Source of the DNA: Hypanus sabinus
Lineage: Eukaryota
DNA length: 64,000 nt
Assembly (NCBI RefSeq): GCF_030144855.1
Contig: NC_082722.1
Location: forward strand, 19,902,001 to 19,966,000
Direction of reading: 5' to 3'
The position numbers and the translations under genes are program-made. Below the pieces are notes generated by a model. That model ran no database searches. It was not told where the DNA came from and saw only the letters and a program-made list of their open reading frames with translations. This document shows positions 12,601 through 35,555 of the stretch, in pieces (position 1 is the stretch's first letter; every line of letters begins with the position of its first letter).

Positions 12601-12924
12601 TTAACCGTATCAAATGTTGACAGCCTTCCAAGCGTGAATGGTTACACTATGAGCGAGTATTTGGAAAATGATTGCCGTTTATTTTCATTAAAGGACGAAA
12701 ATAATGAAATGTGGTCGGATATTGACGTCAGATCGCGTACTGAAACAAAGAAGTGGCCGTTCTATGAATAAAACTATATTATTTATGTAATTAATTTCAA
12801 TACTCTGCTAGACTATAGACTGACATAGCTATGTAAATGAATTTGAAGATGGGTGAAGATATTAGCCTTTTTCGAATCAAAAATGTTTATCTAAATAGAA
12901 GGAACAATTGCCTGAGAGGCGAAA

Positions 12925-13720: not shown

Positions 13721-14044
13721 TTGATTGCTCTTTTTTCAGTCCTTTGGGAAAGTATTCGACATTATTGGAAGATGAAAACACTGGGAGCTAAAGGTAACGT
13801 GCTGTGTCTGACGGGGAATTGCTTCGATAGCTGCCGCTGAGAGAAGGGAAGAAGGAGCACACATCATGCTGAAGCCCCTTTGGTCTTGGACACAGTCTTC
13901 TCACTATGTTTTCAAATGCATGAATGAAGTAACACAAGACCATGTGGATGAATATCAGGTTAGATAGTACAGTAATTTCTGGACAATAGCTGCAAAACAT
14001 TCGAAAAAAAACGATCCCGCGTAAGTAGAGGAATCATGGAGCAT

Positions 14045-16420
14045 CAGTGGAGAGCGAAACAGATCTAAGATTCCTGTTCTAACGCCTGATGAATGGCTGC
14101 AAATTAAGGGAGTGATTTTGTTTCCTACTCTTTGATTCTCCCTACTCTACCAAGCATGTTTCACGTTACATTATAAGGATAGTGGAATTTGCAATCTTTG
14201 CAGGATGTCTGTAAGTACTTTTTAACTATGAGAACGCTCCTGATGATTGAGAAAACATTTTAAGTCATGCCCATGGTAATAGGCAGATATTGCACAATTC
14301 ACGGGGTATCTCGAATTGTCCAAAACATCTCTTGAGAAAATTAATCCAATCGAATTCGAGTTAACTTGGACCGTCAAATCGAAAACGTTTTAAATATCTG
14401 ATTTTTTTTTGGTAATTTTCAAAGCTTCTCAAATATTCCAAAATGAAGACAAAAGTTAAGGATTTAAAAATCTTAAAACTCTAAAGAAATGTTTTTCTTA
14501 GTTATCAGTACTTTCAGATAGGTTAAACACCGCTTTGGCAGTGAATAAATTTCAATTAACAATCATTTGCCGATTTAAATGCAATCTTCCCAATATTTGT
14601 AAGGTGCATTTTAAACTCTTAAGACATCTGTACTTTGTTTTAACCTCGATTGTGATTATCATCATTCACTTCTATTAACCAGGAGGAGAATATCGCTCTC
14701 AGCACTAAAAGACAGGTGGATATTTTTTTCCACATAAATTAATTTAATATGTGTGGGACCATTGGTTCCAGTCGTTGTTTCTTCAGTTGACCTGAACGTG
14801 AGGCCACCATTGGAGAATACTTTGCTGGTTTACGGGAATAAGTTATACAGGCACAGAACACATTCCCGCGACTATGTCCATGCCTACTATCAAGCACAAA
14901 TTACGTAAGTCAAACAATAACCGTATATCATTCTGCAATACCCTACTATCCCCGGCATTCAAAGGAACATACCCCACCACCAGCTCGATGGATCCATGGC
15001 TTCCTACGGCCCTGCACCAGGCCTTCGGCCCATTTCGCCAATGGAGACCGATCCCAGCGAGACCCGTTACTTGCGTTTGTAACTTACCACAGTGAACCTT
15101 TTCTATCTGAGTACCCATCCAAATGTTTCTAACACGTTGCAATCATACCCACTTCTATAGACAATCCCGTACTCTCTTCCAGTTACCAAGCTCCCTTGCT
15201 TTGGAAAACTTGCCCTAGATCCAGTAAAATGTTTCCTCTCCAATTTGAATCGATGCATTCCCATTTTCGATTCAGCTATTCTGGGTAACAGATTGCAACC
15301 ATACCCCTGCTTGCGCCCTTAAATATATAAGGTCACCACTCAACCTTTGTGCTATCGGGAATTGTAATCCCAGACTTTCTCTACAGTTAAAAACATACTT
15401 TCCCGCAAAAATATTTGTGAATATTTTCTGGACTTTTCTGGACTATTTCAAGCTTCGTCGGGCCTTTTCTATAGCCGGCTGATCAGAAATGCACAGAATA
15501 CTCTGAGCATGCTTCACCAACGAACTGTACAGTTGAACATGACGGCGCAAATGCCGTACTCATTGCTACAACTGTGAATAAATGTGACAAATTCCTTTTT
15601 CACCAGTCTGTCCACCTCTATTGTCACGTTCAAAGATGAATCTGCATGTACCTTCAGTCCCTTTGTTTTACGTCAATGCTCTGGGCAATCTACTGTGCAA
15701 TTCCTGCCCCGGTTTAACTAACCAAAATACAACACTTCGCAAATGTCCAAGTAATATTCTATCTGCAATTGTTTTTCCTGCTTTCGCAGTTTATAGCCGT
15801 AGATATCTTTCACTGTCTAATATACCACCAATTTCATTGCATTCCGAAAGATATTAACGAATTTAAAAAAAAATGTCATCTGATTATTTCGGAGTTGAGA
15901 AAAATACATTAAATGGAGCCTACCTGTTCAGTACACCAGTTGCAGGCGGTCATTCTTGATATCAAGTTTCTACTATCACCGTTTGACTCCCTCTACTAAA
16001 CCAATTTTGTATTCTTGTGCTCAGGTGGCTGGTTCACATTGGCTCTCATGTCATCGAGTTTTCTGTGCAAGCCTGCAATACGGGACCTTGCAAAAGTCAA
16101 TGAAGTTACAGTCCAATTGTTGCAATCCGCAATTTCCTTCATCACTTCATCAAAGCAACTGAATGAAATTTGTGATCCGAAATGACAAATCCATGCTGAC
16201 CGGCAGTTTTTCAACCCTTCCGTTTTCAAGTTGTGATAGATTCTCTCCCTCTGATCCACTCCAGTATGTTTCCACGCACCAATGCTGGGCACGCCAACTG
16301 CAGCTCTCCTCTTATCCTTGCAGATCTTCTTAAGTAAATGCACATTTGCCACTCCCCAATGCTACGGCAACACAATCTCCGTTAAAGACGATGCTTATAT
16401 CTCTGCAACAGACGTTACAA
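14045..16420 (+). repeat. Older duplicated block Y2
   Basis: Shares ordered segments with Y1 and Y3 (e.g. catctcttgagaaaa, ttagttatcagtactttca, tacctgttca...ctatcaccg). Confidence 0.7.
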
Positions 16421-17167
16421 TTTCTCCTCTGGCTTCTCGCAATGTCAAGTGATACATTTGATCAAGTGCTGTGAGTTCATCAAACGGTCTGAGTTCTTAC
16501 ACCGTGAACACCCCGTTCCCCGGATGCCTCCATTATTACTTATGTGGATCTGTTAAAAAATAATTTTAATTCCCTCTAACCCCTTAGGTTCCATGATTTT
16601 CATCACAGTTATGGGAAGTAATAATTGACAGCTCAGTCATTGCGATTTCTCGGACGCTTTTTCCTCATTTCCATTTATTTTCTATTCAGAAGTTGTATTG
16701 TGCTGCTTTTGTGCTCTCATGATTCCCGTCGGGTCTACCGAAGTACATCATATATTTTGAAGGGGATTACTTGAACCCGTTCCCTACAGGTGATGCAGGT
16801 CTTCTCACTCAGAAACAGTGTCTGAATGTCCTCGTGAACCGGGATTCTCTAATCCTGTTGGCCTTGTCATTCTCTTTACCGATACCACTCATGCATATTA
16901 GCGGCAGTTATCAGAGGGTCTCGCCTTGAAATGGAAGAGGAAAATTTAAATGAGGTTTTGAAGCAGGTACATTACCCAAAGTGTAGTAGTTGACTTGACA
17001 GTGCTACAAGAGAGTGTTGATTTGATCACAATGGTTTAAAGACATTCAAACATGCCCATGAAGAGGTAAAAAAGAGGTACGTAGACTCTGTCCGATCGGA
17101 TAGAAATCAATTTGCATTATGATCGATGCAGACATCATTGGTCGAAAGGTACTTCCCTGTTTTCTTT

Positions 17168-17503
17168 GAGGGGTGATTGATAGGTTCGTGTCCTAAGGGA
17201 GAAGGAGTCAATTTCAGAAAACGGAGCACGCTTATTTTTCAACATAGTCCCCTCCTAAATTTATACACTTAGTACAGCGGTCGTGGAGCAGACGGATCTT
17301 CGACCTCCTGAAAGTGTCCACAGATGGGTGATTGATACGTTCGTGACCTAAGGTAGAAGGAGATGAATTATACAGCTCTTGTTACCTGCACATACAGGTC
17401 AACTGTTTGAGTGATCATGCAGAAAGTTTGAAGTTAATAACTCATCTCATTCTACCTTAGACAACGAACTTATTTATCAGCCCTGATGAGTTATTAACTT
17501 CAA
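17168..17503. mobile_element. Mariner-like MITE fragments with direct and inverted copies of a TIR-like unit
   Basis: gggtgattgata.gttcgtg.cctaagg at about 17171 and 17326, inverted copy at about 17441-17483, and a perfect 19-bp inverted repeat at 17428-17446 / 17485-17503. Confidence 0.5.
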
Positions 17504-18015
17504 GTGGTAAAGGGCCGAATGAGCAGAAATCTGATTGGAGAGGACATTGGGCCTTTGGAGAAAGAAAAGAAAAAAAAAAACGAGGAGCAGCAGCAAAGCG
17601 AGGTGAGGAGAAGATAAGGAATAAAATGGGACCCGGAATGGGAAATAGAAAGCGATGAAATGTGTACAGGAGAAATTACTGAAAGTTTGAGAATTCTATG
17701 TTCAGATCAACAGGTTGGAGGCTAATGAGAGGGAATATAAATCCACCTATCAAGTGCCATCTCTTTAAGTCCCGCTTCCCCTCCACTTATCCCCTCCCAG
17801 CTTGTTCATCTTTCACTCCTCTATCTCCTTATGGTGACTTCTTCCCCCTTCCTTTCCAGTCTTGAAGAGGTACCTTACCCCGAGACATCGACTGTTTGTT
17901 TTTCATCATTGATGCTGAGCTTCGCTCGCTCGTTGTGTGTATTCCACGGGATTTCCTGTATCTACAGCATTTCTTCTACCAAAGGCATTTACGTAGCATT
18001 GACCATGTGACTTCA

Positions 18016-18022
18016 TATATAA
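18016..18022 (+). promoter_or_regulatory. Possible TATA box (TATATAA) upstream of gene 1
   Basis: About 63 nt before the ATG. An acceptor-like tttatatgttttag just downstream means a 5' UTR exon is an alternative explanation. Confidence 0.3.
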
Positions 18023-18084
18023 TGCGCACTTGATTATTACATCCTATGAATTTATATGTTTTAGACAGAGCACTCTCATTTGCA

Positions 18085-18139
18085 ATGTCGATGGGTGCAA
18101 CCATTTTGTCCGTGGTTCTGCTCGCCGCGTTTTTGCCAG
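18085..18139 (+). CDS. Gene 1 exon 1, signal peptide (MSMGATILSVVLLAAFLP)
   Basis: ATG at 18085 (second in-frame ATG at 18091), hydrophobic core, phase-1 donor CAG|gtatgc. Same 55-nt length and donor as the gene 2 leader. Confidence 0.85.
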
Positions 18140-21100
18140 GTATGCATAATTTTTTGTGCCCAATCTATAAAACAGACATTTTATAATATTATGCATCATT
18201 TACCCGCAGCAAATTTAGAGATAGTAAACATTCAATTCGCATACCAGTGTTCTGCCTATTTTGTCTGCTGATTCGTTGTCCAGTGAATGCAACTGTTTTC
18301 ATTATTCTCACTTATGCTTTGTCAGCCGCAAAAGGAACTTCGGCAAAATTGGAACAATTCCCTCCAATCTTAAACGTCACAATCGGTGGAAATGCATCCA
18401 TGTACTGCAAATTTCCAATACTACAAGATACTGCTGAAGTTTCATGGTGGAAGGATGGTCAGAACACATTTATAGAACCAGACAGCAGAAATCAGTTCCA
18501 TGTAAAAAAAGGCAGGGGCACATTTACCCTCCTGAATGTGAGCTACGCAGACGTCGGCGTGTATTACTGTCAAGTGAAAAGTCAACAACAAATATTGGGA
18601 AATGGAAGTGGCTCTCAGCTTATTGTGTTAAGTAAGTGTCTTTATTCCTGGAAGTGGAAATTTTTCATCTTGTTGCATTTGAATAAAATCCAAGATGCGG
18701 ATATGTTGTGAAATATTATTGTTGGTTGAAAATTTGTGCCATTAATTTGCTTTCCAGCTTTTTTTTTACAGGAAAATATCATTTCGGTTTTTTTTCAGAT
18801 TTTAAAAATTATTTCGATGTGATTATGCAGATTTGCTTTTGCTTCACTTATTATTTGTTCCGTTGATACTTCCAGCCATATATTTGATATGCCTATATTC
18901 CTACACAACATCTCACCCTCTTACCGCCTTGACTGTTTTCCTCAGCCAGCCCATAAGAACATAAGGAGTAGGCCATCCGGCTCATCGAGCCTGACACGCC
19001 ATTCAATAACATCATGGTTGATCTGTCCATCAACTCAGCTCCATCTACCTGCCCTTTCCCCATAACCGTTAATTCCCCTTTTACGTACCCCGTAACCGGG
19101 TGTATGACCAGCAAAGATAGAAGAACCGTTGGAGTCTGGTGGTACTATTTTCAAACAGTCTTTATTAGTAAAATATACAAATCAATATCAACAATGCAAA
19201 TATATAGATAATACACGTTAGCAATACTAAACCTAAACGTGTGAGTATAATAATAATCAATTATAAACAAGCTCCATCGCTGTCTAGGGGATAATGAATC
19301 GTCATATGTGAATATAAAGTTCGGTACAGTTCATACGTACTGATGTAGTTGTTGGTGGTTTTGTTGTAATTGTTGGGGGGGGGGGTAGAGAGAGAGAGAG
19401 AGAGAGAGAGAGCAAACAGTGACAGCTACAGTCAATCAAACCTTCCTTTACACGTTCTTGATCCGTCGATGTGTTGTGGCCATTTAGGTATCACCCCTCT
19501 GTCCTTCAGCTAGACCGTTCTCCTGTGGTGGACTCGTCACCCAGGCAAGGGCGGACACACACACACAAGCCCCCACCGGCCCTGTATTAAACTGACCGAA
19601 CCTTCGTTCGGTCTCCAATGCCCCACACCTTCACGTGGGTTCCAACACTCAAGCAGTGCTCACTAGTGTGTCTCCTTGTGTGTCTGAAGAGTGTCTCCCC
19701 AGACCTCACTTTTATCCCCACTCACGTGGTCTCAGGTGTCAATCAGTTTTGAATGGCTTAGCCTATCAAACCAGCCTACTCCGGCTGTTCACTGAGGAAT
19801 TTTAATGAACATAATAGTACCAAGTAAACAGCCCTCTCCGGAGCCATAATTCTTTCAGGGGTCATAATATAGTGGGTCAACAAGTCTCTCTCTCCTGCTG
19901 TTATCTCTCCCTTGTCTGAAGCAGATGTTCCAGTCCCAGTATGTTTTCCCTTTGTCTCTCTTTCTCTCTCATTAGCAGCGTGGTAACAATAACAGTTTTG
20001 TGATTCTCCCAGGAATATAGGCAACTCTGCACCCTTCTGCCCATCAGAGTTGTTCATCCTTCATAACACCCCTACTACGTAAAAATCTAATTTTATCTTA
20101 AATATATTTAGTGAAGAAGAATCAACTGCTTCGCGGGGCAGCGAATCCCACAGTTTCACATCTCTTTGTGAAAAACAGTTTCTGCTCAGCTCCGTCCTAA
20201 ATCTTCTCCCCTCAATCTTGATGTAATGTCCCCTAGTTCCAGTCACACCTACCAATGGAAACAACCTTCCTGCTTCTATCTTATCTATGCTTTTCAAAAT
20301 TGTCTATGTTTCTATAAGATCTCTTCTCATTCTTCTGAATTCCAGAGAGCATAGTCCCAGGCGACTCAACATCTCCTCTTCATCTCTTGAATCATCCTGG
20401 TGAACCTCCTCTGCACGGCATCCAAAGCCAATAGATCCTTCCTCAAATATTGTGACCAGAACTGCACACAGTACTCCAGGTGCAGTCACCAGAACCCTGT
20501 ACAGTTGCAGCATGACATCCCAGCTCTTGAATTCAATCCCTCCAGCAATGAAAGCCAAGATTCCATTTGCCTTCTTAATAACCTGTTCCACGTACAAGAC
20601 AAATATTTGTGATTCATGCACAAGCACTCCCAAGTCCCTGTACACATCATTACGTGCTTGTCCGGACATTTTGAATGTCTGTATCAAGTCACCATAAAAT
20701 TCTGCAGAAGCCTCCCAAAAAGGTTAGATGAGACTCTGGGGACGAATTTGCCTTACAGCAACAAGCACGTAATCATCTGTAATTCGGATATGGCCCATGG
20801 CAGTGCTAAGTGTGTAACCGTGAACTCGGGTTGGCCATTGTATGCAGAGAGCCAAATGCTAAACAATAGACAATAGACAATAGGTGCATAAGTAGACCAT
20901 TCGGCCCTTCGAGCCTGCACCGCCATTTTGAGATCATGGCTGATTGACTACTATCAATACCCGGTTCCTGCCTTGTCCCCATATCCCTTGATTCCCCTAT
21001 CAATAATATACCTTTCCAGCTCCTTCTTGAAAGCATCCAGAGAATTGGCCTCCACTACCTTCCGAGGCAGTGCATTCCAGATCCCCACATCTCTCTGGGA

Positions 21101-24100
21101 GAAGAAGTTTTTCCTTAACTCTGTCCAAAATGACCTACCCCTTATTCTCAAAGTATGCCCTCTGTTACTGGACTCTCCCAGGATCTGGAACATATTTCCT
21201 GCCTCTATCTTGTCCAATCCCTTAATAATCTTATATGTATCAATCAGATCCCCTCTCAATCTCCTTAGTTCCAGCGTGCACAATCAAAGTCTCTCTAACA
21301 TCTCTGCGTATGACAGTCCAGACATCCCAGGAATTAACCTTGTGAATCTACGCTGCACTTCCTCTACAGCCACGATGTCCTTCCTTAACCCTGGAAACCA
21401 AAACTGTAGAGAATACTCCAGGTGTGGTCATACCAGGGCTCTGTACAAATGCAAGAGGATTTCCTTGCTCTTGTACTCAATTCCTTTTGTAATAAAGGCC
21501 AACATTCCATTAGCCTTCTTCACGGCCTGCTGCACTTGCACATTCACTTTCAGTGACTGATGAACAAGGGCTACTAGATCTCTTTGTATTTCTCCCTTAC
21601 CTAACTCTACACCATTCAGATAATAATCTGCCTTCCTGTTCTTACTCCCAAAGTGGATAACCTCACACTTATTCACATTAAACGTCATCTGCCAAGTATC
21701 TGCCCACTCACCCAGCCTATCCAAGTCACCCTGAATTCTCCTAACATCCTCATCACAAGTCACACTGCCACCCAGCTTAGTATCATCAGCAAATTTGCTG
21801 ATGTTATTTTCAATGCCTTCATCCAAATCGTTGACGTAAATTGTAAAGAGCTGTGGTCCAAATACCGAGCCCTGTGGCACCCCACTAATCACCACCTGCC
21901 ATTCCGAGAAACACCTATTTACCACTATCCTTTGCTTTCTATCTGCAAGCCAGTTTTCTATCCATGTCAATGTCTTCCCCCCGATGCCCTGAGCTTTGAT
22001 TTTAGCCAACAATCTCCTATGTGGGACCTTATCAAATGCCTTCTGAAATTCGAGGTACACAACATCCACTGGATCTCCCCCGTCTAACTTCCTGGTTACA
22101 TCCTCGAAAAACTCCAACAGATTAGCCAAGCATGATTTACCAATGGTAACTCCATGCTGGCTCGGCCCAATCCTATCACAGCTATCTAGATATGCTACTA
22201 TTTCATCCTTAATAATGGACTCTAGCATCTTCGCCACCACTGATGTCAGGCTGGCAGGTCGATAGTTCTCTGATTTCTCCCTCCCTCCTTTCTTAATAAG
22301 TGGGATAACATTAGCCATTCTCCAATCCTCAGGAAATGATCCTGAATCTAAGGAACATTGGAAAATGATTACCAATGCATCTGCAATTTCCAGGGACACC
22401 TCCTTTAGTACCCTAGGATGCAGACCATCTGGAGCTGGGGATTTGTCAGCCTTCAGTCCCATCAGTCTTCTCGTCACCGTTTCCTTCTTAATATCAATAT
22501 GTTTCATTTCCTCTTTCCCCCTATGTTCTTGGCCCATCCATACATCTGGGAGATTGCTTGTGTGTTCCTTAGTGAAAACAGATCTACAGTAATTAAATTT
22601 TTCTGCCATTTCTCTGTTTCCCATAACGATTTCACCCAATTCATTCTTTAAGGTCCCAACTTTGTTCTTAATTATCTTCTTTCTCTTCACATATCTAAAA
22701 AAAAGCTTTTGCTATCTTCCTTTATACTCCTGTCTAGCTTGCGTTCGTACCACATTTTTTCTCCCCGTATTGTCTTTTTAGTTAAGTTCTGTTGTTCCTT
22801 AAAAGCTTCCCAATCATCTGTCTTCCCACTCACCTTAGCTCAGTCATACTTCCTTTTTTTTAATGCTATGCAATCTCTGACTTCCTTTGTCAACCACTGT
22901 GGCATCTTTCCCCCCTTTGAATCCTTCCTTCTCTGGGGGATGAACTGATTTTGCACCTTGTGCATTATTCTCAAGAATACGGGCCATTGCTGTTCCACTG
23001 TCTTTTCTGCCAGGCTATCAGTCCAGTCAACTTTGGCCAGCTCCTCCCTCATGGCTCCATATTTTCCCCTGTTGAACTGCAAAATTAACACCTCCGAGCT
23101 GTCCTTATCCTTCTCAAATTGCAGATAAAAACTTATCATATTATGGTCACTACCTCCTAATGGCTCCTTTACTGCAAGATCGCTCATGAAATCCTGTTCA
23201 TTACGTAACACTAAATCCCGAATAGTCTTGTCCCTGGTCGGCTCTCGTACAAGCTGTTCCAAGAATGCATCCCGTAGGCAGTCTACAAACTCCCTATCCT
23301 GTTGTCCAGCACCAACCTGATTCGTCCAGTTCACCTGCATGTTGAAATCCCCCATAACTACTGCGACATTACCTTTGCCACATGCCAATGTTAACTCCCT
23401 ATTCAACTTGCACCCAATATCCATGCTACTATTTGGTGGACTGTAGACAACGCCCATTTCGGTCCTTTTGCCCTTACTGTTCCTCAGTTCTCTCTACACA
23501 GACTCTACTTCTCCTGACCCTATGTCCCCCCTTGCAACGGACATAATATCATTCCTTACCAGCAGGGCCAACCCACCCCCGCTGCCCACATTTCTGTCCC
23601 TACGATAGCACGTATACCCTTGTACATTCATTTCCCAGGTCTGATCTCCCTGCATCCATGTCTCCATTATCCCAACAGCATCATAGTTACCCATCGCACC
23701 TTGGCTTCAAGCTCCTCCGCCTTATTTCTGACACTTCGTGCTGAGATATAGAATTGTTAGCCCATTTCTCCTCTCTCTGTTTGAATCGCTGCCTATTGTG
23801 CTTAACCCAACTCTCCAAACTCCCATCGGGCTATAAGCCCCTAGAAATATGTTGTCTTTCCTAAATCTTATTATTCTTTCAACACATGTTGTGACAGATT
23901 GATAATGTAATCTGACTGTAGACTTTCCTAAGTTAGATATGGACCATTGTTGTAGAGAAGGCAGTCCATGTTTGCAACAGCGTGAATTTTGGGATCACCT
24001 TTGAGTGAAATCTCTGCAGGGAGAAGCGGAGTTCTTTCAGCTCCTGGGTTGCCTCTCTGCAGGGCATCATCGTTCGTATAACAGTGCCAGGTCACTATCG

Positions 24101-27100
24101 AACAATTTGCTGTAGGCTGACAGGTTTATAAAAAAATAGAAACGTGGACTAAATGTGCTTAATATCAGCCTCGCATTTGCATTCCTGGATGTTTCATGGA
24201 GGGTGTGATTTGCCACATTCAGCACATTAAATAGGGAAACAAAATCCAGCAATGACTTACATTCCGAGGAGAGCACTATCAGTGAATGTTGATGACTGGA
24301 AAGCTCCAACGCATGTTCTGAAAAACTACCTGAACAAATGAGTTGCCAGGATATTAAAAAAAATGTCCAAAAGCTGATTGCGCTCGGACTTTGGAAATAG
24401 GTCATATTTTGGGTTCTGTAGTTCAGTTTTGATAGGAAATGAAAAGAAAAATAGAGGAAGGCACATTTTCCAAAGCCTAAGGGCTGCCACAAACACAGTC
24501 CTGTGATCAAGCTGAAAGACCATTCAAAACAGAATATCTTCCTCACATTGCACCCCTTAGATTCGCCTTCTCGGTGTCATCTTCGAATTCTTCCTTTCAT
24601 CTGTCTCTGCACAGTGACTCGATTTTACCTTGTTTATTTTGGACTGTTTGTGCTGGATGGTGACTGCACGTGCTGTGTGGGAATACATGGACTGTAATTT
24701 GTAGTTGACCCCATAAGAACGATGTTTCATTTAGCCATGTACATCAGTCTGGTTGAATAACAATGAACTTGAACAAAATAATTTGTACAATACTGTTAAC
24801 CAATGACGTGTAACTAATTTGATAGTGAGATGTCATTGTAATTGGCGGGAAATAAAGGAAGTTGATTTAACTAAATGAATGGTAAACACCCAATAAAACT
24901 CTTTTTATTCAAGTTTCCCCAACTCCATTGGCAATCGTTCCTATTGGAGAGTGTTCGTCTCCTCGGCATCTCCTCTGTAAAACAGCTGCCTTCAACCCGA
25001 AGGAATTAGAAATCGTCTGGCAAAAAAATAACAGGCAAATTTGGACTGGAATAGAAACAGTGATATACCAGAACGCGGAGGGTTCATACGAGGCATACAG
25101 TTCATTGGAAATTAAACAGTCTGCTTGGGGAGAAGATGTTTACACCTGCCTAGTGTCGCATGTCAATCTCACTGTGTCTGTCAGTTTCAGGTACATCCCG
25201 AAGCAAGGTAAGATGCTGTCTTGATTGCATCCTGAAGTAAGGTCTCTGACCGAAATGTTGTTTTATTCCTCTCCTGATCTGCTGCGTACCTTCAGCGTTT
25301 TGTGTGTTACTATGAATGTTCAACATGTTCTGAATTTCTAGTATTCCGGGCAAGTTGGAAACGTTTACAAATGATATAGGTGTGTCGATCAAATCTGGTT
25401 AAGAACAATCACGGAACAGCTACCCAAACACGGATGAATGGCGAAATTTTTAGATTACTTGATTGCAGTGAACATTCAATGTGAATGGTGTTTCAAAACA
25501 AATGTCTTATACCCTCAGTTTAAATCGTGTAGGATGAATTAAGAAATTGGTTTCGGTTAGTACGTGCAAGGTAATAACCCTCCGGACTTTTGTCAAAGAT
25601 GAGACAAAGCAAAACTTAAACTCTAAATCGCATAGTGATATAACAAAGAAGGAAACAATCTGCTGGTGAGTGAAGGTGCATTTAATTAACAGTTTTATCG
25701 GAACAAATGTGGACATGGGGCAAAATCATAAACAAGGTAGGAATTCCTGAACACTGAGGCGTGACACTTAATTGACACCTGGAACGAATGCAAAGGGTGC
25801 GAGACTGTTAAAAGACCTTGACAAAATTCGGTCTCTGCGTAATTACCTTCCAATAATAGTGGGCAACACAGTGCAAATGGATGACTCGTGTTTATCTATG
25901 TTTTCATTATGCAGTTTTCCATTAATTCGGGTTTGTCACTCGTAAAGCATTGGAAAACTTAACAGTGGGAAACACGTTTAATATGCCCGATACACATTCA
26001 AGCTTAGAGGTACAGTGCTATAAACTCATGTAGTTAGCTAATAATTTCAGCTCGTAATGCAGAAGCGGAATGTTGAGGCACCAGGACTCCTTTGGCGTGA
26101 CTATAAGTTATCTATAGGGTTTTGATCGTACTAAAGAATGTCATTGACAGATGTGACTTAAAAGGTTAATTCGAGATCAGAATTGTATTAGGTTAGATGA
26201 TTACACGCTCAATTGATCTATTGATAACTATTGTCGAGAGAAGTACAGGAAAAAGCACCCGAGCCTATTCTTAGTCTTAGTAAATAGCTCGTATATGTCT
26301 GGAGAAAATAAAAAAACAGATTACTTTGTTCTATACTCTATATTCTGCAATTTTCCTATCAGTGTGTCGTGAGATTTGAAAGGACCCTATATAATAGTTT
26401 GCATTGTTGCTTCTCATACGTGGATTTAATTTTAGATGTATAAACACTTAACGGTTTCTTTTTCAAGGCGCTGATAGCAGATTTATTACCACATGTGCAG
26501 CGGGCGGAGCAGCAATTTTAATTTTAATTCTGATTATAGTGTTGCTGAAACTCAAGTTAAAGAGACCGCACGGTAAGAAGACTGATTGCTGAGAAACAGC
26601 ACCTCTTTTCGTACAAAATAGATGCGTTAATGACATTTAACTGCAAAAGAGTAATTGGCATTTACAGAATGTTTGGATCGCGATTTTCGAAGCCAGATTT
26701 CAGTGATAATATTCTGGCACAATATATGCTTGATTTTAAAGTTCAATTATTTCAACAACCCACTAGAAGTATTCCATATCTGATTTCCGAATGCTGTTAC
26801 ATCCCTTTGGAGTTCTTCAAATATCTTTTTTTAATGCAATGGCAGATCCGTATTTTGATACGTACATGACTTGGCGTAGATCTGAACTCCCTTTGATTGT
26901 GTAGAGAACATCGACTAACTTATGTACTTCCTCTTGGTTTTAATTTCCATTTTGGTTGGCATACTTAAATACAGTACCGCCGCAGTTATGCTATTATCAC
27001 TTTACAGCCTCGTTGAAAGTCAATGCCTTTTGAGCTAAGCACCAGGTTAATGCAGAACACAATATATTAGCACGACTGTTACAAACAAATACTTTCTGAC

Positions 27101-30100
27101 AGATCTGTGACTTCAGTAGTTCCACTAACACGATTAATTCGATTGGTATCAAATGAATAATGTACAATGTTTACAATGCAAATAATTTATTTTTGATTTC
27201 TTTTCTGAAGGGGGTAACACAAATACTTTGGACGAATGTCAGAATGAAGACCCGGTAGGTGAAGCGACTCGTCTTGTTTCAGAGCAGAATATTTGCATAG
27301 CAAAGATATCATGAATCTATTTAATTCCATACCACTTTGGAGCGTAGTAGGGAAAATAAAACTATTTTCCCCGTCAAATAGTTATTTTCAAGTACATATC
27401 CAAGATTTATTTGAATGTTCCCGTTGCATCTGCTTCCAGTAAACTTTCAAGATTCCACACCGGTTCATAGCCGGTTGAATTGGAACGGGAATGGTAATAT
27501 TTACCATTGGAAGGTCAGTTGCTTTGACGAATAATTCAACATGCATTTGAGACTGTGAGACACTGCTAAATGTTAGTTTATGAGAATTGCAGTTGACTGG
27601 AGAAAGGAAAGTAAACTGCGTGCACGAATCAATTCGTAATGTGTGTTACATTTGATCGAACGGACAATAAGCGAGGTAAAAATGTAACGAGATATTGTTT
27701 TGTTGAAATGGTCTTTGCAATATTAAATGCAGTTTTAACCCTGATCCGCAACACAGATCCACAGACCTGTGCATAACTTGCAATGGAATCGAATATGCTT
27801 GCAACATAACCTTGTAGTACGTGGTGAACAATGATTCTCCACATGGCACCTTCTAGTCCACGAGAATCAGCTGAATGAGTATTATCCTCAATGTGGGAAG
27901 CAAAGCCTTAAACAGATAAAAATACTCTCGTCTCCCGTTTGTATTCCAACCAGAAAATAATCAGTGGCTACTGACTGATTTTGGAAAGAGAACCAGTTGA
28001 CATTCCAGACTGATGACCCTTCTGCAGATAGCAACGTGAACATCAACTATTTTCCTTTAGCTGGTGGCTCCTGATCTACTAAAATGTTGTGTGTTCTATT
28101 TTTCTGTTTTATTTCATGCTTCCAGCACTTCAATGTTATATTTTTTGCTACTTGGATTCATTCTCAAGATAACCTTGGTCTTCTTGTGTTTCATTAATTA
28201 CATTCGCTAGTTTAACTCATTTAGTTTTAATTTTACCTAACGACTTTAGCTGCAAATGGAGCGACTGCAGCAACTAAGATAAGGTAGTCATACAGACATC
28301 ACTGATTTCATTATGGTAGAATTCCGCTAAAACTTTAACCAGTGTTCGAGCACTTCTGGAAATGTAGGAAATGTAGTAATATCTAAGTTGAAGATGAAAC
28401 ATTCATGACAAATCTTTACTGTTACTTTATTACTCTGGAATGCTATGCCATTATTTCAGTGAAACAAATTCTATTTTTATCATTTACCGTAACAACTACG
28501 TCAATTGCTTCTATCTATTTCGATCGTAATTCACCAGCAAATCCAATCAAATTAACGGAGTCCCAGGATGCCGCTCCCCTGTTTCCGGCTAGAGTTAAGC
28601 GAGACTTAACATCGGGACTTGCCATTTGCTCCAATATCCTCAACTTAAATAATGTGATTGTTCAGGGACATAGTTTCAATTTGCACTGCAGGGACGATTT
28701 CTGATCAGGACAATGATCACGATAATTCGACGCATGCGTAAAAGATCGAACATGGGCCTATGTCCATGCACAGAATTTAGAGCGATGTAAAAGAAAGGAT
28801 TTAGCAGATGAAAAAAAAACAGAGATGGCTAGAACCGAGAACCCCATCCTATTCCTACGACTGTTATAAGCAGTGATTTGAAAATCTAAACATAGCGACT
28901 TTCAGCCTGAAGCAGTCGAGATCCCACATCCGTATGATGTATGAACAGTATCATTGTGCGCAGACAAATTGATATTCCAACATTTTTTTTTATCCTCGGT
29001 GTTTAGATTTGGCAAATCGAATTTAGTTTATGATCTCTGTATCAGTTAGCTGTATTAAGCATGTTTTTCTAACAGGCTGAACAAGCACCGGTTGAGGACA
29101 CCACTGCCTATGCTTCACTAAACCATAGGGAGAGCAAACCATTTCGCAAAGACGGACAACATGAGGAGTGCGTTATCTATTCCCAGGTAAAGTAGAGAGA
29201 TTAACGTGAATGTGACATAGCTTTGCATTAGAGATATATCACTGTTACAGACCCTTCCGGTGCAAATAGCCCATGCCGCTCAGTCACACCCACATGACCA
29301 ATTAACCTAATCTGTAAATTATTGGCGGAAACCGGAGTACCCCTGAGGGTTCAGATTTATATATATATAATCATCATCCAAAAGGAAGTTAAGTTTACAA
29401 ACCTGAGGATACCATTGACACTGCAAGAGAATATAAACTGCGTCAAAGGGGGATTCCCTTTCAGTGAAACATCCTACCGTTCTGGTACAAACATAATATT
29501 TTCTTCTATCTGTGGGGACTCCAACCTGAAGGCATAAAGGCCGATTTGCGTAACTTTTGGGAATTTCTGCATTATTACATTCTCTCTTTTTGTCCGTTCT
29601 CTGTTTCACCTTTTCTCTTCTCGTCATCTGCCCATCAGGCTGCCCTCCACCCATGTGCTCCTCCTTCTTCCATTTTGCAGGGTCCACTCTCCTCCCGTCT
29701 CCGACTCCTTCATACACTCTTTACCTTTTCCACCCGACACCTCCCAGCTTCTTACGTCATTCCCACCCCAGTCATCCACATACCTTCGCACTCAGCTGTT
29801 TTCACCTGTCACCTGCTGCATTTCCAACACCCCCTCCACACCTTTATATTCTGGATTCTAATCCCTCTATTCCAGTCCCGATAAAGCGTCTCTGCCAGAA
29901 ACAATCGACAGTTTGTTTGCCTTCTTGAATGTTGCCTTACGTAATGAATTCCTTCAGTATTTTCTTTGCATTCTTCAAGAATTCCAGCATCTGCAGAATC
30001 TCTAGAGATTACTCTTTCCTTGCTATTACGAATTTAATTTTACATGTAATTTGCACGGGAATAAACACCAAAAAGCAGAAAACTAGGAATGCCATCCTTC

Positions 30101-30788
30101 CTAACGCCCATTATCAGCTCCATAATAAACACGAGTGTCTGAAAATAACTAGGAGAACAGAAGTACCGGAAATACCGAATTGTGACAAAACTGTAATCAG
30201 AAAGCCTGAATGAACAAAGTGCCAACGTTCATTCTATCATTTCCCCGCTGTCCCCGGACAACAATGTCCATGTGCATTTGGAACTGTGTTGGCAGGTTTG
30301 GCTGAGCAAAGACCTGTGAGCTCCATAAACGAAGCAGGATGTGGCAATTGGACACAGATGACCGAAAATACGATTGTATTATAAATTAGCCAATTGTTTT
30401 GTACCATATCTGCTACTACAAGAATTTCTCTACTCCCGTAACATGATTTTGTTAAATTTCTTTTTAAGTAAGGAAATAAAGTCTAATATATGAATATTTA
30501 AGGGAAATCTTGAAACAGTGTTGACATAATTGTGTACAAAGGGTAAGCAACAAAAATGAATTACTTATGAGTACATCTCTAAATCATTGTGCAATCGTGT
30601 CATTCAATTAGTCACTTAATGCTCGACTAACCTTTGATTTTGGATTACATTCACAGACTAAAGGAACTGGAGCTGACAAACTGACTTATGCCGCTCTGCA
30701 GATTCCCGATTCGAATTACACACAGACATCCAAAAATCAAAGCAAACATATATTGTACGCAGATGTAAATACATCAAAGAAGCTGTGA
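18085..30788 (+). CDS. Gene 1: germline-joined VJ-C1-TM-ITIM receptor; join(18085-18139,18326-18631,24914-25207,26468-26572,27211-27254,29076-29186,30657-30788), about 348 aa
   Basis: All introns are GT-AG with compatible phases (1,1,1,1,0,0). Total 1047 nt = 349 codons with no internal stop. Translation gives signal peptide, V-set, C1-set, a 22-aa hydrophobic TM and a tail with ITIM-like motifs. Confidence 0.88.
18326..18631 (+). CDS. Gene 1 exon 2, V-set Ig domain with joined J-like G strand
   Basis: Acceptor ttatgctttgtcag and donor gtaagt, phase 1-1. Translation has QFP, C, W, DVGVYYC and GNGSGSQLIV (ORF 18247-18711). Confidence 0.95.
18955..20660 (-). mobile_element. CR1 LINE 3' fragment in the gene 1 V-C1 intron, interrupted by the solo LTR
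   Basis: ORFs 20061-20297 and 20304-20687 translate to the CR1 ORF2 C-terminus (RDLGVLVH, RRMRRDLIE, TRGH). Confidence 0.85.
19080..20068. mobile_element. Solo-LTR-like insertion (about 990 bp) nested in a CR1 3' end
   Basis: TSD CCCCT (19075-19079, 20069-20073). Ends tttacg...cataaca (degenerate TGTTA...TAACA). CR1 sequence resumes on both sides. Confidence 0.7.
20862..23950 (-). mobile_element. CR1 LINE, most of ORF2 (endonuclease and RT), frameshifted
   Basis: ORFs 21428-22690 (QGSVFGP, FADDTKL), 22840-23457 (GDFN, SDHN), 23494-23694 and 20954-21283; short-repeat 3' tail at about 20862-20883. Confidence 0.95.
24914..25207 (+). CDS. Gene 1 exon 3, C1-set Ig domain
   Basis: Acceptor ctttttattcaag and donor gtaaga, phase 1-1. 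C1 signatures LLC..F.PKELEIVW, NAEGSY, SSLEI, YTCLVSH; Cys spacing 57. Confidence 0.95.
26468..26572 (+). CDS. Gene 1 exon 4, transmembrane (GADSRFITTCAAGGAAILILILIIVLLKLKLKRPH)
   Basis: Acceptor tttctttttcaag and donor gtaaga, phase 1-1. 22 uncharged residues followed by basic KLKLKR. Confidence 0.9.
27211..27254 (+). CDS. Gene 1 exon 5, short cytoplasmic spacer (GGNTNTLDECQNEDP)
   Basis: Acceptor tttcttttctgaag and donor gtaggt. Phase 1 to 0 is exactly what is needed to join the TM exon to exon 6. Confidence 0.75.
29076..29195 (+). CDS. Gene 1 exon 6, cytoplasmic tyrosine motifs (AEQAPVEDTTAYASLNHRESKPFRKDGQHEECVIYSQ|VK*)
   Basis: Acceptor tgtttttctaacag, phase 0. TAYASL is ITSM-like and VIYSQV fits the ITIM consensus. 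Internal donor CAG|gtaaag after 29186; in-frame TAG at 29193-29195 if unspliced. Confidence 0.88.
   Translation, partial: AEQAPVEDTTAYASLNHRESKPFRKDGQHEECVIYSQVK
30657..30788 (+). CDS. Gene 1 exon 7, terminal double-ITIM exon (TKGTGADKLTYAALQIPDSNYTQTSKNQSKHILYADVNTSKKL*)
   Basis: Branch-point-like ctaac and acceptor attcacag, phase 0. LTYAAL and ILYADV match the ITIM consensus. TGA at 30786-30788. Confidence 0.88.
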   Translation, partial: TKGTGADKLTYAALQIPDSNYTQTSKNQSKHILYADVNTSKKL

Positions 30789-30973
30789 AGCTGAGAATCC
30801 GATTGCAGTTCATAGCAATATATTATCAATCTGTGTAGGCCAGAGCATCGCTATGTTTCGTTTCTTGCGTCCATCAAAGGTTGATGATCAAAGGTTGATG
30901 GGAAGATAAATGATGATTTCCGTTTTCGACGCTTCTCCGATTTATTAGAGGCAATTGTCATAAAATAATATCA

Positions 30974-30988
30974 AATAAAGAAAATAAA
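30974..30988 (+). terminator. Candidate polyadenylation signals of gene 1 (two AATAAA)
   Basis: AATAAA at 30974-30979 and 30983-30988, about 190 nt after the exon 7 stop. Confidence 0.55.
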
Positions 30989-32051
30989 GAAAAGAACAGC
31001 AATAAGCCATTCCAGCCCTGTCTACTGCCCGGCCATTCAAGGTGATAACGACTGATATGTTCAGTCGTCGTCTCTTCTTCTGGTATATTGGAAAAACCCG
31101 ATGATTCCAAGAAAAAAAAAGTATTTCACCTTAAACGTTTCCCAGCATATTTGCTCCCACAAACCTTACAAGATGAAAAATAAATCCAGAGATTCACCAC
31201 CATCGGCGAGGATTTTTTTTTGACAGAGAAAACTCGCTAATTAAAAAATCTATTCTTGCACATGTATAATCAACGTTCAACCGAGGGAAATATAGATCGG
31301 AGGATGTTCGAATATTCGCAACGCGTTCTCGTGACAACACCTCTCTGCCTGAATTTTGATGTAGAGAGAAACAGAACAGATATTTCTGATTGGTAACCCG
31401 ATAAAGGTTATATATCTAACGCTTTAACCATGTTTCTCACCCTTGATTCTTCCGAGAAACTTTCACGTTTTAACCGAAAGTATCGTAGAATTTGCAGTGA
31501 TTGTAAGAGTTTGTAAAAAAAAACTCTTTAAACCATGTCAACGATCCCGATGGCTGGAGAAAGATTTCATGTGAGAAAACCATGCACATGAATAATATCA
31601 CATAATTATTGGGCTTACATCAATATTCTGATCCGAATCTTGAGAAAATTAGTCCAATAGCCTCCAGTGTTAACTCGGACTGTCAAATGGAAATCGACTT
31701 GAACCGATGATTCTTTTTTCTTTTTGGCAAAATATGAAGCTTCCCAAATCTTTCATCCCAACTGCTAAATAAATGTTTTTCTTTGTTATCAGTAATTTCA
31801 AAGAGCTAAATACATTCGTTTTCTATACAAATTACAATTAACAAGCATCTATTGAATTAAAACAATCTGGTCAATATTTGTAAAGTGTATTTGAAACTGA
31901 TAAGGTATCTGTACTCCGTTTTCTCCTGGAAGGTGATTCCCATCATACCCTTCTAGTCGTAGAACATACCTTGCAATTCTGAAATCCAGGTAGGTTTTTG
32001 TGCATGAAATTCATTCCATAGGTGTTGTCCCACTCTTTGCTTATTTACTAG

Positions 32052-33728: not shown

Positions 33729-34405
33729 TGTAACGCTCTCCTTCGGGTGTAACTAATAACGCCGAATTCAACGTCGAGATAAACCACAGTCAATGAAACC
33801 AGATCGCAGTAAGATTAACCATTTACTGTTCATTCTTCACATTAACATATGGTGAAAACTGTTGATAAAACAATACAAGATTGATACAGTATTTGTTCCT
33901 TTCTTAATATCACATTTCAATTGTAAATACTTGTAAAGGTGACTATAACTACATTACACTAAGGTGCAGTATACAGGGAGAGTTTACCTGCTCCATTGAC
34001 TACTTTAAATACACTTCAATGCAAACTATCCGCAACTCTTTAACTAACGAAAACATAAACATTATCGACCGTCGTTACTTTTAACAGGATCGGCGTTAAC
34101 ATCTTAGTTCAATATATCGATTATCTATTAACTTACAGCGTTGCTCTCACTGTGATTTCTAATGCTTGCAAAACAACTTCTGCTCAGGTCTGCCTCGTGG
34201 TGAGCTCTCCCCACCCTCGCATTGATCTCAAACCGGTATTTTCCCACAAGACGCGGCGAAACCGGATGTTACGTCATCGCATGCCGATATATTTTACATG
34301 CAATGAATATACTTTAAACACTTCTAATTCTAAATAGAAAATACTAACAAATGAATTACTAAGCGAAAATATTATAAACTAAATATCTGTCGTAAAGCCA
34401 ACACA
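33729..34405 (-). repeat. BEL 3' LTR
   Basis: TG...CA termini; about 10 substitutions against the other LTR. Confidence 0.95.
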
Positions 34406-34463
34406 CTCCCCGCCTGACCTTCGTAAGGTCACAATGAGCAGAGTACAAAACTTAGTCTCTTAA

Positions 34464-35491
34464 TCAGTCATTGGGTAGAAGTAGAATAACTTCTGTAACT
34501 GGCCTTTGGTAAATTTTCACATCGCCTTGGTCGGTGGTCTTCAGTTCGATCTTCCTGACATGTCCATCCACACTAGGGAACGTAGCAGTGATTCTGGCCA
34601 TTGGCCAGCTGTTGCGGGCGATTTGCTTGTCCCTGAGCAGGACTAAGTCTCCAACTTGAAGATTCCTGCGGGGTTCTGTCCACTTTTGTCTCTGTTGCAA
34701 CAAAGGTAGATATTCCTGTCTCCAGCGAGACCAGAACTGATTTGCCAGAGCCTGGACTTGTCTCCATTGCTTTGTGTACAAATCCTTGCCTGAGAAGTCT
34801 CCTGGTGGAGGGGGTGCTCCTGCCTTCTGTGTAAGGAGCATTGATGGTGAAAGTATGAAGGGGTTTTCTGGATCAGAGGACACAGGTAGGAGTGGTCGTG
34901 CGTTTATAATGGCTGTGACCTCTGCCATTAGGGTGCACAGTACCTCGTGGGTCAATCGGTTGCGTTGCTGCAGAAACATTGAATCCAGAATTCTTCTGGC
35001 GATCCCAATCATCCGCTCCCATGCGCCTCCCATGTGCGAGGCGTGTGGTGTGTTGAACTCCCAGTTGCATCCCTGTTGACTGAGGTACCTTTGCACTGCT
35101 TTGTCCATGCCCAGCTCCTTGGATGCTCCTACAAAGTGCCGCAATCAGATCTTAACTGTTTTGCAGGGCCTCTTATCGCAAAGAACCGCCTGAGAGCGTT
35201 GATGCAGCTGGATGTATCCAAAGATTCGATGACCTCAATGTGTACCGCTCTTGAACTCATGCAGCTAAACATGATGGCCCACCGCTTGCTCTCTGCTTGT
35301 CCTCCTCTGGTACGTGTCGTAGTGATAGACCAGGGGCCGAATACGTCGAGTCCCACATTTGTAAAGGGAGGGCAGGCTTCAAGGCGCTCAGGTGGGAGGT
35401 CCGCCATGCGTTGAACTTCTAATCTGCCTCGTAGTTTCCTGCAGGTTACACATTTATGAAGTACCGAATTGATCAGTGTTTTACCTCCCAA
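34464..35491 (-). pseudogene. BEL/Pao integrase, split by frameshift
   Basis: ORFs 35129-35491 (CVTCRK, GLDVFGP, SDCG) and 34464-35144 (GGAWERMIG, FWSRWRQEYL, WPMARI). Confidence 0.9.
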
Positions 35492-35555
35492 GATCCACAG
35501 TCCCGCTGCTCTTATTGCTCCTTCGGTAAGGTGACGGCCCTGGTGCTTTACCTGT

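Follow-up and report, generated by a model that had tools for sequence, protein, structure and literature searches.

The stretch of stingray DNA analysed here (the window, 64,000 nucleotides in length) carries a gene whose ectodomain is built like an antigen-receptor chain and whose tail is that of an inhibitory receptor, which raises the question of the receptor lineage to which it belongs. The most probable answer, at roughly 70%, is that its product is a type I membrane receptor and belongs to a SIRP-like multigene family confined to cartilaginous fish. The sequence and its comparison with relatives directly established the gene structure, the types of domain, the motifs, the membership in the family and the conservation. 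As the initial annotation had proposed, seven exons at positions 18085–30788 of the plus strand join in phase to yield a coding sequence of 1047 nt with one terminal stop, translated into a 348-aa protein in the order leader, V-type domain, one C1-set domain, transmembrane segment, spacer and two tail exons. All seven exons were found again on direct reading of their sequences, the open reading frame is intact, all introns are GT-AG, and the exon exit phases are 1, 1, 1, 1, 0 and 0. The features are as follows:

18085–18139, plus strand: exon 1, translation start and signal peptide (18 codons and one further base, exit phase 1)
18326–18631, plus strand: exon 2, V-type Ig domain with a germline-fused J-like G strand
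18632–24913, plus strand: intron 2, 6.3 kb, with a minus-strand LINE and a homology breakpoint inside
about 20864–23737, minus strand: LINE with endonuclease and reverse transcriptase ORFs at 21431–23493 (Pfam RVT_1 and Exo_endo_phos_2)
24914–25207, plus strand: exon 3, C1-set Ig domain
26468–26572, plus strand: exon 4, short stalk, uncharged transmembrane helix and basic stop-transfer
27211–27254, plus strand: exon 5, 44-nt spacer that turns phase 1 into phase 0
29076–29186, plus strand: exon 6, first tyrosine pair
30657–30788, plus strand: exon 7, second tyrosine pair, then the stop codon TGA at 30786–30788
30974–30988, plus strand: two AATAAA signals about 190 nt past the stop, a possible polyadenylation site from a pattern search

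Comparison with relatives supports this structure throughout. In tblastn searches, the proteins of relatives align with all seven exons, and the best full-length match, Hypanus P0154, reaches 63% over 348 aa at an E-value of 9e-164, so that the similarity lies far beyond chance. The leader (exon 1, with the donor cag/gtatgc) has conserved counterparts in Hypanus P0007 and Mobula P0008; exon 4 was delimited by its hydrophobic stretch and splice sites and by alignment with residues 215–254 of P0154; and the spacer exon 5, aligned with P0154 and P0040, shows 93% nucleotide identity to Hypanus with no indel and has a counterpart in Callorhinchus. The whole seven-exon plan recurs in this chimaera, in Callorhinchus P0176 and P0182. 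The tail exons match the Hypanus locus at 93% identity and free of indels (exon 6 at 93.7%, against 83–87% in its adjoining introns, and exon 7 at 93.2%), whereas the introns match at 81–89% with indels, a contrast that appears to point to selection on the exons and was counted in favour of the gene. The sequencing runs that contain the gene sequence are of genomic DNA from a related species.

The distal domain is of the V type in Pfam (V-set, 31.5 bits against a cut-off of 26; also I-set and Ig_3), and it scores slightly higher as an I-set than as a V-set domain. It carries four N-glycan sequons and is short, only 53 residues separating its cysteines; a C'' strand is probably missing, since the AlphaFold model of a relative has no predicted strand at residues 62–73, between C and the next strand. 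The domain is 81% identical to that of Mobula P0008, and its exon shares 90% nucleotide identity with the V exon of Hypanus L001 without indels. Its J-like strand, G-S-G-S-Q-L-I-V (G-x-G-x-x-L-x-V), lies inside the V exon directly 5' of the donor, and one of the four sequons falls within this motif, as in about two-thirds of family members. No recombination signal sequence (heptamer, 12 or 23 spacer, nonamer) was detected near either V exon in the window, and a scan of both strands of the 64 kb returned only four weak matches. The reading of the V and J-like strands as fused in one germline exon holds.

Exon 3 is assigned to the C1-set (E 3.9e-12), with the butyrophilin-type C2-set_3 reaching only E 0.037; its PDB matches are Ig constant domains, UrIg2 and SIRP-alpha. 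Neither a second C1 exon between the V and transmembrane exons nor any further Ig exon was found in the introns. In agreement with this plan, the AlphaFold model of the relative P0154 predicts two confident Ig domains, a transmembrane helix and a disordered tail. The tail itself consists of two duplicated units (Y-x-x-L, 19 residues, Y), which place tyrosine pairs 23 residues apart in exon 6 (TAYASL and VIYSQ) and in exon 7 (LTYAAL and ILYADV). Both exon 7 motifs are canonical ITIMs, so that two of the four conserved tyrosines stand in such motifs, one in a T-x-Y-x-x-L motif and one, after splicing, in a non-ITIM context. The sequence hallmarks of an inhibitory receptor, as first described for this tail, are present, and the exon 7 motif pair is kept throughout the family down to Callorhinchus. 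Siglecs, PECAM-1 and LAIR-1, among other receptors, have ITIM pairs of a similar kind, so the tail alone is no proof of SIRP ancestry.

By sequence comparison, the gene belongs to a large tandem multigene family that is shared by sharks, rays and chimaeras and confined to cartilaginous fish. In an exhaustive HMMER search with the V exon, the V-C1-type relatives recovered were all Chondrichthyes wherever names were looked up. Of the best 150 matches, the one-domain matches belonged to the V-C1 family in every case that was named (30 were looked up) and the others were proteins with multiple Ig domains; no Ig or TCR chain was named. Similarly, word-indexed searches yielded 34 and 47 relatives, all chondrichthyan. 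The family comprises long ITIM-tailed forms and many short-tailed forms, some of the latter having a K, R, D or E residue within or next to the transmembrane segment; a few relatives (Amblyraja P0071, Chiloscyllium P0170 and Callorhinchus P0175) possess two C1 domains in a V-C1-C1 order. In the flanks of six relatives, which extended up to 10 kb, only family members were found, plus one OGFOD1-like gene in catshark; OGFOD1 is not known as a neighbour of human SIRPA. The suspicion that automatic annotation could mislabel such a gene is confirmed, for RefSeq gives this one family at least eight unrelated automatic names, including SIRP-alpha-like (the most frequent type), NCR3LG1-like (many others), Ig lambda-like, tapasin-like, TCR beta-like, MHC class II DP alpha-like and PD-L1-like. 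No publication naming or describing the family was found in the open literature searched, a limited library.

Among known proteins, the closest is SIRP-alpha (PTPNS1/SHPS-1/CD172a) by Foldseek, by language-model features and by automatic naming, with a small lead. In a Foldseek search against Swiss-Prot, the four top matches were rat, cow, human and mouse SIRP-alpha (E 4e-17, at 15–16% sequence identity), and the nearest named ESM-Atlas clusters were "PTPNS1-like" (0.97) and "Signal regulatory protein alpha" (0.96). In a profile search of the PDB, V-C1 matched SIRP-alpha (2wng) at 6.8e-28, and SIRP-gamma was matched at 1.8e-25. The lead is small: in Foldseek, CD276, TAPBPR, B7-H6, TCR beta and butyrophilins come next, no more than about 3 log units behind, and in the PDB profile search SIRP-alpha is equalled or surpassed by UrIg2 and antibody chains. 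SIRP proteins combine V and C1 domains with ITIM signalling through SHP-1/2 and pairing with SIRP-beta, and SIRP-alpha itself is V-C1-C1 with an ITIM tail (PMC12975943). The stingray gene shares with it the distal V-type domain with a germline J-like strand followed by C1-set sequence, a single uncharged transmembrane segment, and four tail tyrosines in two duplicated pairs about 23–26 residues apart; as in the SIRP family, there are sister genes with short tails, and some relatives are V-C1-C1. The two differ in that SIRP-alpha has two C1 domains against one in the stingray gene, whose V domain is short and lacks the C'' strand and of whose four tyrosines two are not in canonical ITIMs. Moreover, no SIRPA synteny was found in the flanks of up to 10 kb around the six relatives, and the stingray family is large, tandem and restricted to cartilaginous fish.

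Several other receptors bear a partial resemblance. NKp30 (NCR3) has a similarly short V/I-type domain, and the G strand of human NKp30, much like that of the stingray gene, has a J-like motif of the G-N-G-T type that includes an N-glycan sequon; NKp30, however, is an activating receptor without C1 and with a charged transmembrane segment. In white shark, five annotated NCR3 copies lie by AIF1 in the MHC class III region, and identity with NKp30 was rejected in view of the C1 exon, the uncharged transmembrane segment and the apparent position of the family off the white shark MHC chromosome. UrIg and UrIg2, described by Flajnik et al. in 2023 and 2025, are likewise non-rearranging elasmobranch genes that begin V-C1, and UrIg2 (9dmx) is the top summed PDB match of the family profile at 6e-35; its high score results from three C1-type domains, the V-C1 stretch alone giving 55 bits. 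Membership in this group was rejected, as the stingray gene has only two Ig domains against V-C1-C2-C3 or more; furthermore, UrIg is MHC-linked, and an ITIM tail is described for neither UrIg nor UrIg2. With its 10 Ig domains, UrIg2 assembles into disulfide-linked homodimers that have an Fc-like unit, and it shows linkage to the IgH/TCR-alpha-delta complex (PMC12227049). PRARP, described in 2019 from chicken and other bony vertebrates, is set beside the stingray gene by description only, as a non-rearranging IgSF gene with a joined VJ. NITRs, known only from bony fish, are similar in their germline-encoded V domain with its J-like motif, in having both inhibitory and activating members, and in their large, fast-evolving clusters, and differ in having V or V plus I domains without C1. 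The 2019 paper reportedly describes the PRARP products as V-C-TM proteins. PRARP has been cited as an antigen-receptor relative with a joined VJ domain (PMC10751288; PMC11599192) and is mentioned among VJ genes "in the MHC" (PMC10751288), whereas the stingray-gene family is seemingly off the MHC chromosome in white shark; NITRs, too, are counted among the joined-VJ genes (PMC11599192).

The history of this gene copy is probably mosaic, its V domain and its C1 domain and tail coming from different lineages through recombination among cluster members. In blastn comparisons with Hypanus loci, positions 17323–20648 follow L001 and those from 23887 onward follow L002; at larger scale, 2209–20648 is collinear with the P0007 locus and 25473–32049 with the P0154 locus, two loci that lie on one Hypanus chromosome at a distance of 2 Mb. 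The homology changes over between 20648 and 23887, a stretch filled by the LINE. The V domain, C1 domain and tail have different nearest relatives, and the V and C1 trees are in conflict: exon 3 groups in the C1 tree with P0163, P0199, P0038 and P0168 (SH-aLRT 100), and placement of the V domain with the partners of its C1 is rejected by the AU test (p 1e-5). As the breakpoint lies inside a LINE, an assembly join is conceivable, and the same data could be read to mean that there is no single functional gene at all, the leader and V half of one member merely abutting the C1, transmembrane and tail half of another through a deletion or an assembly join inside the LINE, with the gene unexpressed or absent from the animal. 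This is unlikely: no N gap interrupts the sequence from the V exon to the last exon, intron 2 holds no leftover exons of either parent gene, splice sites and phases all fit, and no exon contains a stop or frameshift. Ectodomain shuffling is usual in tandem paired-receptor clusters, and in Narcine P0012 and Heterodontus P0151 the same V lineage is found attached to ITIM tails; in addition, the reverse AU test on C1 is borderline (p 0.058), with the groups in these tests named after the trees had been seen.

The placement of the family as a whole admits further readings. That its members are B7-H6 or other B7-type ligands, with a V plus C ectodomain, and not SIRP-type receptors draws on the likeness of B7-H6 (NCR3LG1) and butyrophilins in their extended two-domain arrangement: B7-H6 (3pv7) is the best rigid-body match (TM 0.68 by target, rmsd 3.9), CD276, PD-L1, NCR3LG1 and butyrophilins stand within the top 30 Swiss-Prot matches, and about half of the RefSeq automatic names point the same way. 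The rigid-body match, however, mainly reflects the extended inter-domain geometry of the predicted model, and SIRP-alpha comes first by Foldseek E-value and language-model features; with a C1-set second domain in place of the B7-type C, a J-like G-x-G strand and duplicated ITIM pairs, the latter two being receptor features, this reading is very unlikely. Several points favour a kinship with antigen receptors. In the V-profile search of the PDB, the alignments that span the J strand come only from the V domains of Ig light chains and TCRs; the order of a germline VJ exon and then a C1 exon resembles an unsplit antigen-receptor chain; and the family is as old as the chimaera/elasmobranch split. 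The gene could then be a relic or direct derivative of the non-rearranging VJ-C1 receptor later split by the RAG transposon into Ig and TCR; a two-domain VJ-C1 ancestor of this kind is postulated in published models (PMC12227049; PMC10751288). The same argument applies equally to SIRP, PRARP, NKp30 and UrIg, already in the literature, and the V domain is short, its profile fitting I-set domains (titin, contactin and Robo among them) and Ig light-chain V domains about equally. Membership among Ig light chains or TCR chains was itself rejected, given no RSS, an ITIM tail and a V profile that fits the I-set as strongly. Linkage to the MHC, a point to check in the initial annotation, was not borne out in white shark, whose family members appear to be off the MHC chromosome (they lie on a 193.5 Mb record, and the gene listing for chromosome 19, which carries the MHC, stops with a gene ending at 115.6 Mb), and the Hypanus family gene numbers are far from the AgRC-linked UrIg2 models, which is weak evidence. 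The relic idea, for which nothing specific speaks here, has been published for SIRP, PRARP and UrIg, with UrIg and UrIg2 as the published candidates for the pre-RAG role (PMC12227049); it is not favoured and is quite improbable. No better are the chances of an independent, early-diverging lineage of the VJ-C1 ancestor of Ig, TCR and UrIg, retaining the two-domain form with an inhibitory tail in a cluster that still makes new receptors by shuffling V, C1 and tail exons at repeats, of which the present copy seems to be an example, and forming no side branch of SIRP. The initial proposal of an antigen-receptor-shaped inhibitory receptor has the support of the sequence, and the complete, non-rearranging VJ-C1 transmembrane protein stands; not supported in the form given is the premise that VJ plus C1 is the hallmark of TCR and Ig chains, a combination that SIRP-alpha shares (PMC12975943).

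Under the preferred SIRP-like reading, we infer expression, phosphorylation, phosphatase recruitment, cell type and ligand binding by analogy with SIRP-alpha. Once the V domain has bound a ligand, Src-family kinases would phosphorylate the tyrosines of the tail, and each tyrosine pair, with its spacing of 23 residues, could dock the tandem SH2 domains of SHP-1 or SHP-2. These phosphatases would restrain the activation of the cell, which is probably a leukocyte of the myeloid or NK-like type. In a paired-receptor system, members with short tails, some of which carry a charged transmembrane residue, may act as activating or decoy partners.

If the SIRP-like reading is true, inhibitory receptors with a joined VJ, one or more C1 domains and duplicated ITIM pairs would predate the split between cartilaginous and bony vertebrates, and would later have expanded in sharks and rays into large tandem families of long- and short-tailed, possibly paired, members. 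The family is relevant to annotation as well, in that a single family is scattered under unrelated automatic names. The family also offers a further non-rearranging VJ-C1 lineage, beside SIRP, PRARP, NKp30 and UrIg, for rooting antigen-receptor trees.

Judged by its sequence, the forward strand at 18085-30788 holds a real and apparently intact gene, whose product would be an inhibitory VJ-C1 receptor that is SIRP-like and does not rearrange. Its exons are as follows:

18085-18139, + strand, exon 1, leader
18326-18631, + strand, exon 2, V-type domain
24914-25207, + strand, exon 3, C1 domain
26468-26572, + strand, exon 4, stalk and transmembrane segment (TM)
27211-27254, + strand, exon 5, 44-nt spacer
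29076-29186, + strand, exon 6, first tail exon
30657-30788, + strand, exon 7, second tail exon with stop TGA

All seven exons have canonical GT-AG borders and compatible phases, and the spliced coding sequence comprises 1047 nt and 348 codons, with its sole stop at the end. Exon 2 scores 31.5 bits against Pfam V-set (cut-off 26 bits), with I-set and Ig_3 scoring slightly higher, and exon 3 matches C1-set at an E of 3.9e-12. The G strand, G-S-G-S-Q-L-I-V, lies inside the V exon immediately 5' of the donor, which makes this a 'VJ' domain already joined in the germline. No RSS was detected near this exon when the sequence was scanned for a heptamer and a nonamer with a spacer of 12 or 23. The initial annotation, which had described these exons, their phases, the fused VJ and the lack of a nearby RSS, was right on every structural point. 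Only four weak RSS-like matches occur in the whole window, including a string at 63482 (+; heptamer with one mismatch, 12-bp spacer, nonamer with two mismatches) that lies about 480 bp upstream of the C1 exon of a second gene and can be explained by chance.

With 53 residues between its cysteines, the V domain is a short one. It would be without C'', since the AlphaFold model of a relative shows no strand at residues 62-73, where C is followed directly by the next predicted strand. The J-like strand also bears an N-G-S/T glycosylation sequon at 18599-18607, whose Asn position is shared by 42 of the 65 family members in alignment A2; speculatively, a glycan on the G-strand bulge would lie at the site of Ig/TCR V pairing and would argue against V-V dimers of the antigen-receptor kind. 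The TM is uncharged. At its outer edge, exon 4 (26490-26500) encodes a cysteine in the motif G-C-A-G-G, found also in 25/65 members of A2; this cysteine may link two chains by a disulfide, as happens in the connecting peptides of TCRs.

The sequencing runs that matched the gene did so only weakly, and four of them, aligned over 24900-30800, cover introns as evenly as exons, at 90-95% identity and with exon-exon joints absent; these runs are therefore genomic DNA of a related species, not RNA. The reality of the exons is instead argued for by comparison, in which every exon is matched by RefSeq proteins of related rays, the best relative being P0154 of Hypanus sabinus (63% across all 348 residues). 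In comparison with Hypanus loci, exons 5, 6 and 7 show 93% identity with indels absent, and the introns between them 83-89% with dozens of indels; the V exon shows 90% and its flanks 81-89%. Moreover, the chimaera Callorhinchus has an identical seven-exon plan, small spacer exon included. Expression, signalling and ligand of the studied gene are matters that we infer.

The spliced tail contains four family-conserved tyrosines, in T-A-Y-A-S-L, V-I-Y-S-Q-T, L-T-Y-A-A-L and I-L-Y-A-D-V, and canonical ITIMs among these are the third and fourth alone. Tyrosines 1 and 2 are spaced by 23 residues, as are tyrosines 3 and 4, and this equal spacing indicates that the tail exons are a duplicated 'Y-x-x-L, 19 residues, Y' unit. 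The tail of human SIRP-alpha likewise has four tyrosines, in the same layout. Signalling by SIRP-alpha proceeds from the ITIM to SHP-1/SHP-2 (PMC12975943). Two alternative endings were considered and rejected. When the exon 5 donor is unused, the frame continues for 19 codons to a stop (27255-27320) and yields a short tail similar to the C-terminus of Mobula P0038, a relative; a conserved alternative ending is nevertheless unsupported, because the Hypanus read-through stops after two codons. In both species, read-through of the exon 6 donor would turn the second tyrosine motif into a canonical ITIM, V-I-Y-S-Q-V, with a stop after it; this is no evidence of use, because the gtaaag donor by itself generates the motif.

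SIRP-alpha emerges as the closest known protein in three separate lines of comparison, by a small margin. The top four Swiss-Prot Foldseek matches of the P0154 AlphaFold model are rat, cow, human and mouse SIRP-alpha (E about 4e-17), with CD276, TAPBPR, B7-H6, TCR beta and butyrophilins close behind; the two nearest named ESM-Atlas clusters are 'PTPNS1-like' (0.97, 210 shared features) and 'Signal regulatory protein alpha' (0.96, 203); and, in the PDB, SIRP-alpha 2wng and SIRP-gamma 4i2x are hit by the family profile over their V-C1 portion. On the other side, B7-H6 gives the best rigid superposition, and UrIg2 and antibody chains reach PDB profile scores as high as SIRP-alpha, because they hold several C1 domains. 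The V profile alone matches both I-set domains and Ig light-chain V. The reading as a germline-joined Ig/TCR gene was rejected on this V-profile result and on the lack of an RSS near the V exon. The label 'SIRP-like' is preferred to SIRP, because the studied copy departs from the V-C1-C1 order by which the SIRP family is recognized and orthology is unproven.

The initial annotation had proposed a relic or derivative of the pre-RAG receptor. The literature already counts SIRP, NKp30, PRARP, CD79, CD8 and NITR among joined-VJ genes resembling antigen receptors (PMC11599192), and the candidates it names for a non-rearranging VJ-C1 gene close to the MHC and to the IgH/TCR-alpha-delta complex are UrIg and UrIg2 (PMC10751288, PMC12227049). 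No tie of the present family to the MHC or the antigen-receptor complex was found in a thin test comprising white shark records, a catshark neighbour (one family member adjoins an OGFOD1-like gene) and the gene-number distance in Hypanus. White shark members lie on a 193.5 Mb record, and the last listed gene of MHC chromosome 19 ends at 115.6 Mb. In human, the MHC is at 6p21, the antigen-receptor complex at 14q, OGFOD1 at 16q13 and SIRP at 20p13. Five white shark 'NCR3' genes stand beside AIF1, and this cluster was rejected as the family's likely identity because the record length differs and the CDS of P0193, the one family member checked, spans 22.3 kb, longer than every listed white shark NCR3 gene; other family members may be NCR3-cluster genes.

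The gene is a mosaic in its homology. From 2209 to 20648 the window aligns collinearly (80-85%) with the P0007 locus of Hypanus, P0007 being another relative. From 25473 to 32049 it follows (85%) the 3' half of the Hypanus P0154 locus, whose 5' half is instead collinear with the 5' half of the window's second copy. In the trees, the V domain falls beside Mobula P0008 and Narcine P0012 (SH-aLRT 98 and 96) and the C1 domain beside P0163, P0199, P0038 and P0168 (SH-aLRT 100). In AU tests, whose groups were named only after the trees had been inspected, forcing V with the partners of its C1 was rejected (p 1e-5), and the reverse constraint was borderline (p 0.058). The homology switch falls between 20648 and 23887, in intron 2, where a LINE (20864-23737, -) carrying ORFs for an endonuclease and an RT fills the interval. 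Copies of this LINE in the Hypanus loci match it at 91-92% identity, versus 80-85% for the surrounding orthologous DNA; its element family has therefore been active since the species split or is unusually conserved. Non-allelic recombination between members of a tandem receptor cluster would be expected to leave such a mosaic; an assembly mis-join within the repeat would leave an identical picture, although no N gap lies within the gene.

A second family member runs from 58819 to the window end at 64000 (+), and a young retrotransposon lies between the two genes:

58819-58872, + strand, second gene, leader
59076-59381, + strand, second gene, V exon, 79% identical to the V domain of Mobula P0153
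start near 63963, + strand, second gene, C1 exon, running beyond the window edge
33729-41033, - strand, young BEL/Pao LTR retrotransposon

The J-like strand of the second gene reads R-C-G-S-K-L-T-V, and the first G of G-x-G is thus lost. About 4 kb upstream, a degenerate last tail exon (54557-54673, +) has lost the first ITIM tyrosine (L-A-S-A-A-L) and retained the second (A-A-Y-A-D-V); this exon probably remains from a neighbouring copy that has been lost, and the DNA around it aligns collinearly with sequence upstream of Hypanus P0154. The BEL/Pao element contains a 1529-aa open polyprotein ORF (Pao peptidase, RT) and a DUF5641 ORF between two 677-bp LTRs that are 98.5% identical, and a solo LTR of its family lies at 1231-1921, with a further copy in the Hypanus locus of P0154 (L002).

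An exhaustive HMMER search with the V exon returned 542 proteins at E up to 0.001, of which the best, once giant multi-Ig proteins (titin-like chains) are set aside, are V-C1 proteins of 220-500 aa. Of 30 among them that were looked up by name, 28 are V-C1 and every one of these is from a shark, ray or chimaera; the other two are squamate proteins (E about 1e-10) of different architecture. Members were found in Hypanus, Mobula, Hemitrygon, Narcine, Amblyraja, Heterodontus, Heptranchias, Mustelus, Carcharodon, Scyliorhinus, Chiloscyllium, Hemiscyllium and Callorhinchus, and word-indexed searches added Pristis, Leucoraja, Stegostoma and Pristiophorus. These latter searches, whose queries were a single protein and a profile of 20 sequences, yielded chondrichthyan proteins only and no bony-vertebrate relative. 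Many copies per species lie on one chromosome; for instance, two Hypanus members are 2 Mb apart in the cluster at 19-21 Mb of CM057990.1, and the Callorhinchus cluster covers at least 15.25-15.62 Mb of a single scaffold, MU249845.1. P0071 (Amblyraja), P0170 (Chiloscyllium) and P0175 (Callorhinchus) have two C1 domains, the architecture of SIRP-alpha; those of P0071 are nearly identical, so that either the exon was duplicated very recently or the assembly is at fault there.

Automatic mislabelling, which the initial annotation had foreseen, is borne out by the RefSeq names of the relatives, at least nine in number: SIRP-alpha-like, SIRP-beta-1-like, NCR3LG1-like, Ig lambda-1-like, tapasin(-related)-like, TCR beta-like, MHC class II DP alpha-like, PD-L1-like and CD276 homolog. 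No published description of the family was found in the searchable literature. Judged by these matches, the family is specific to cartilaginous fish, with members already predicted by genome annotation under misleading names, and the studied gene is one of many members of a known receptor type rather than a new kind. Long ITIM-tailed members occur together with short-tailed ones, some of the latter with a charged residue in or beside the TM, and this mix is what one would expect of a paired-receptor system with inhibitory and activating forms.
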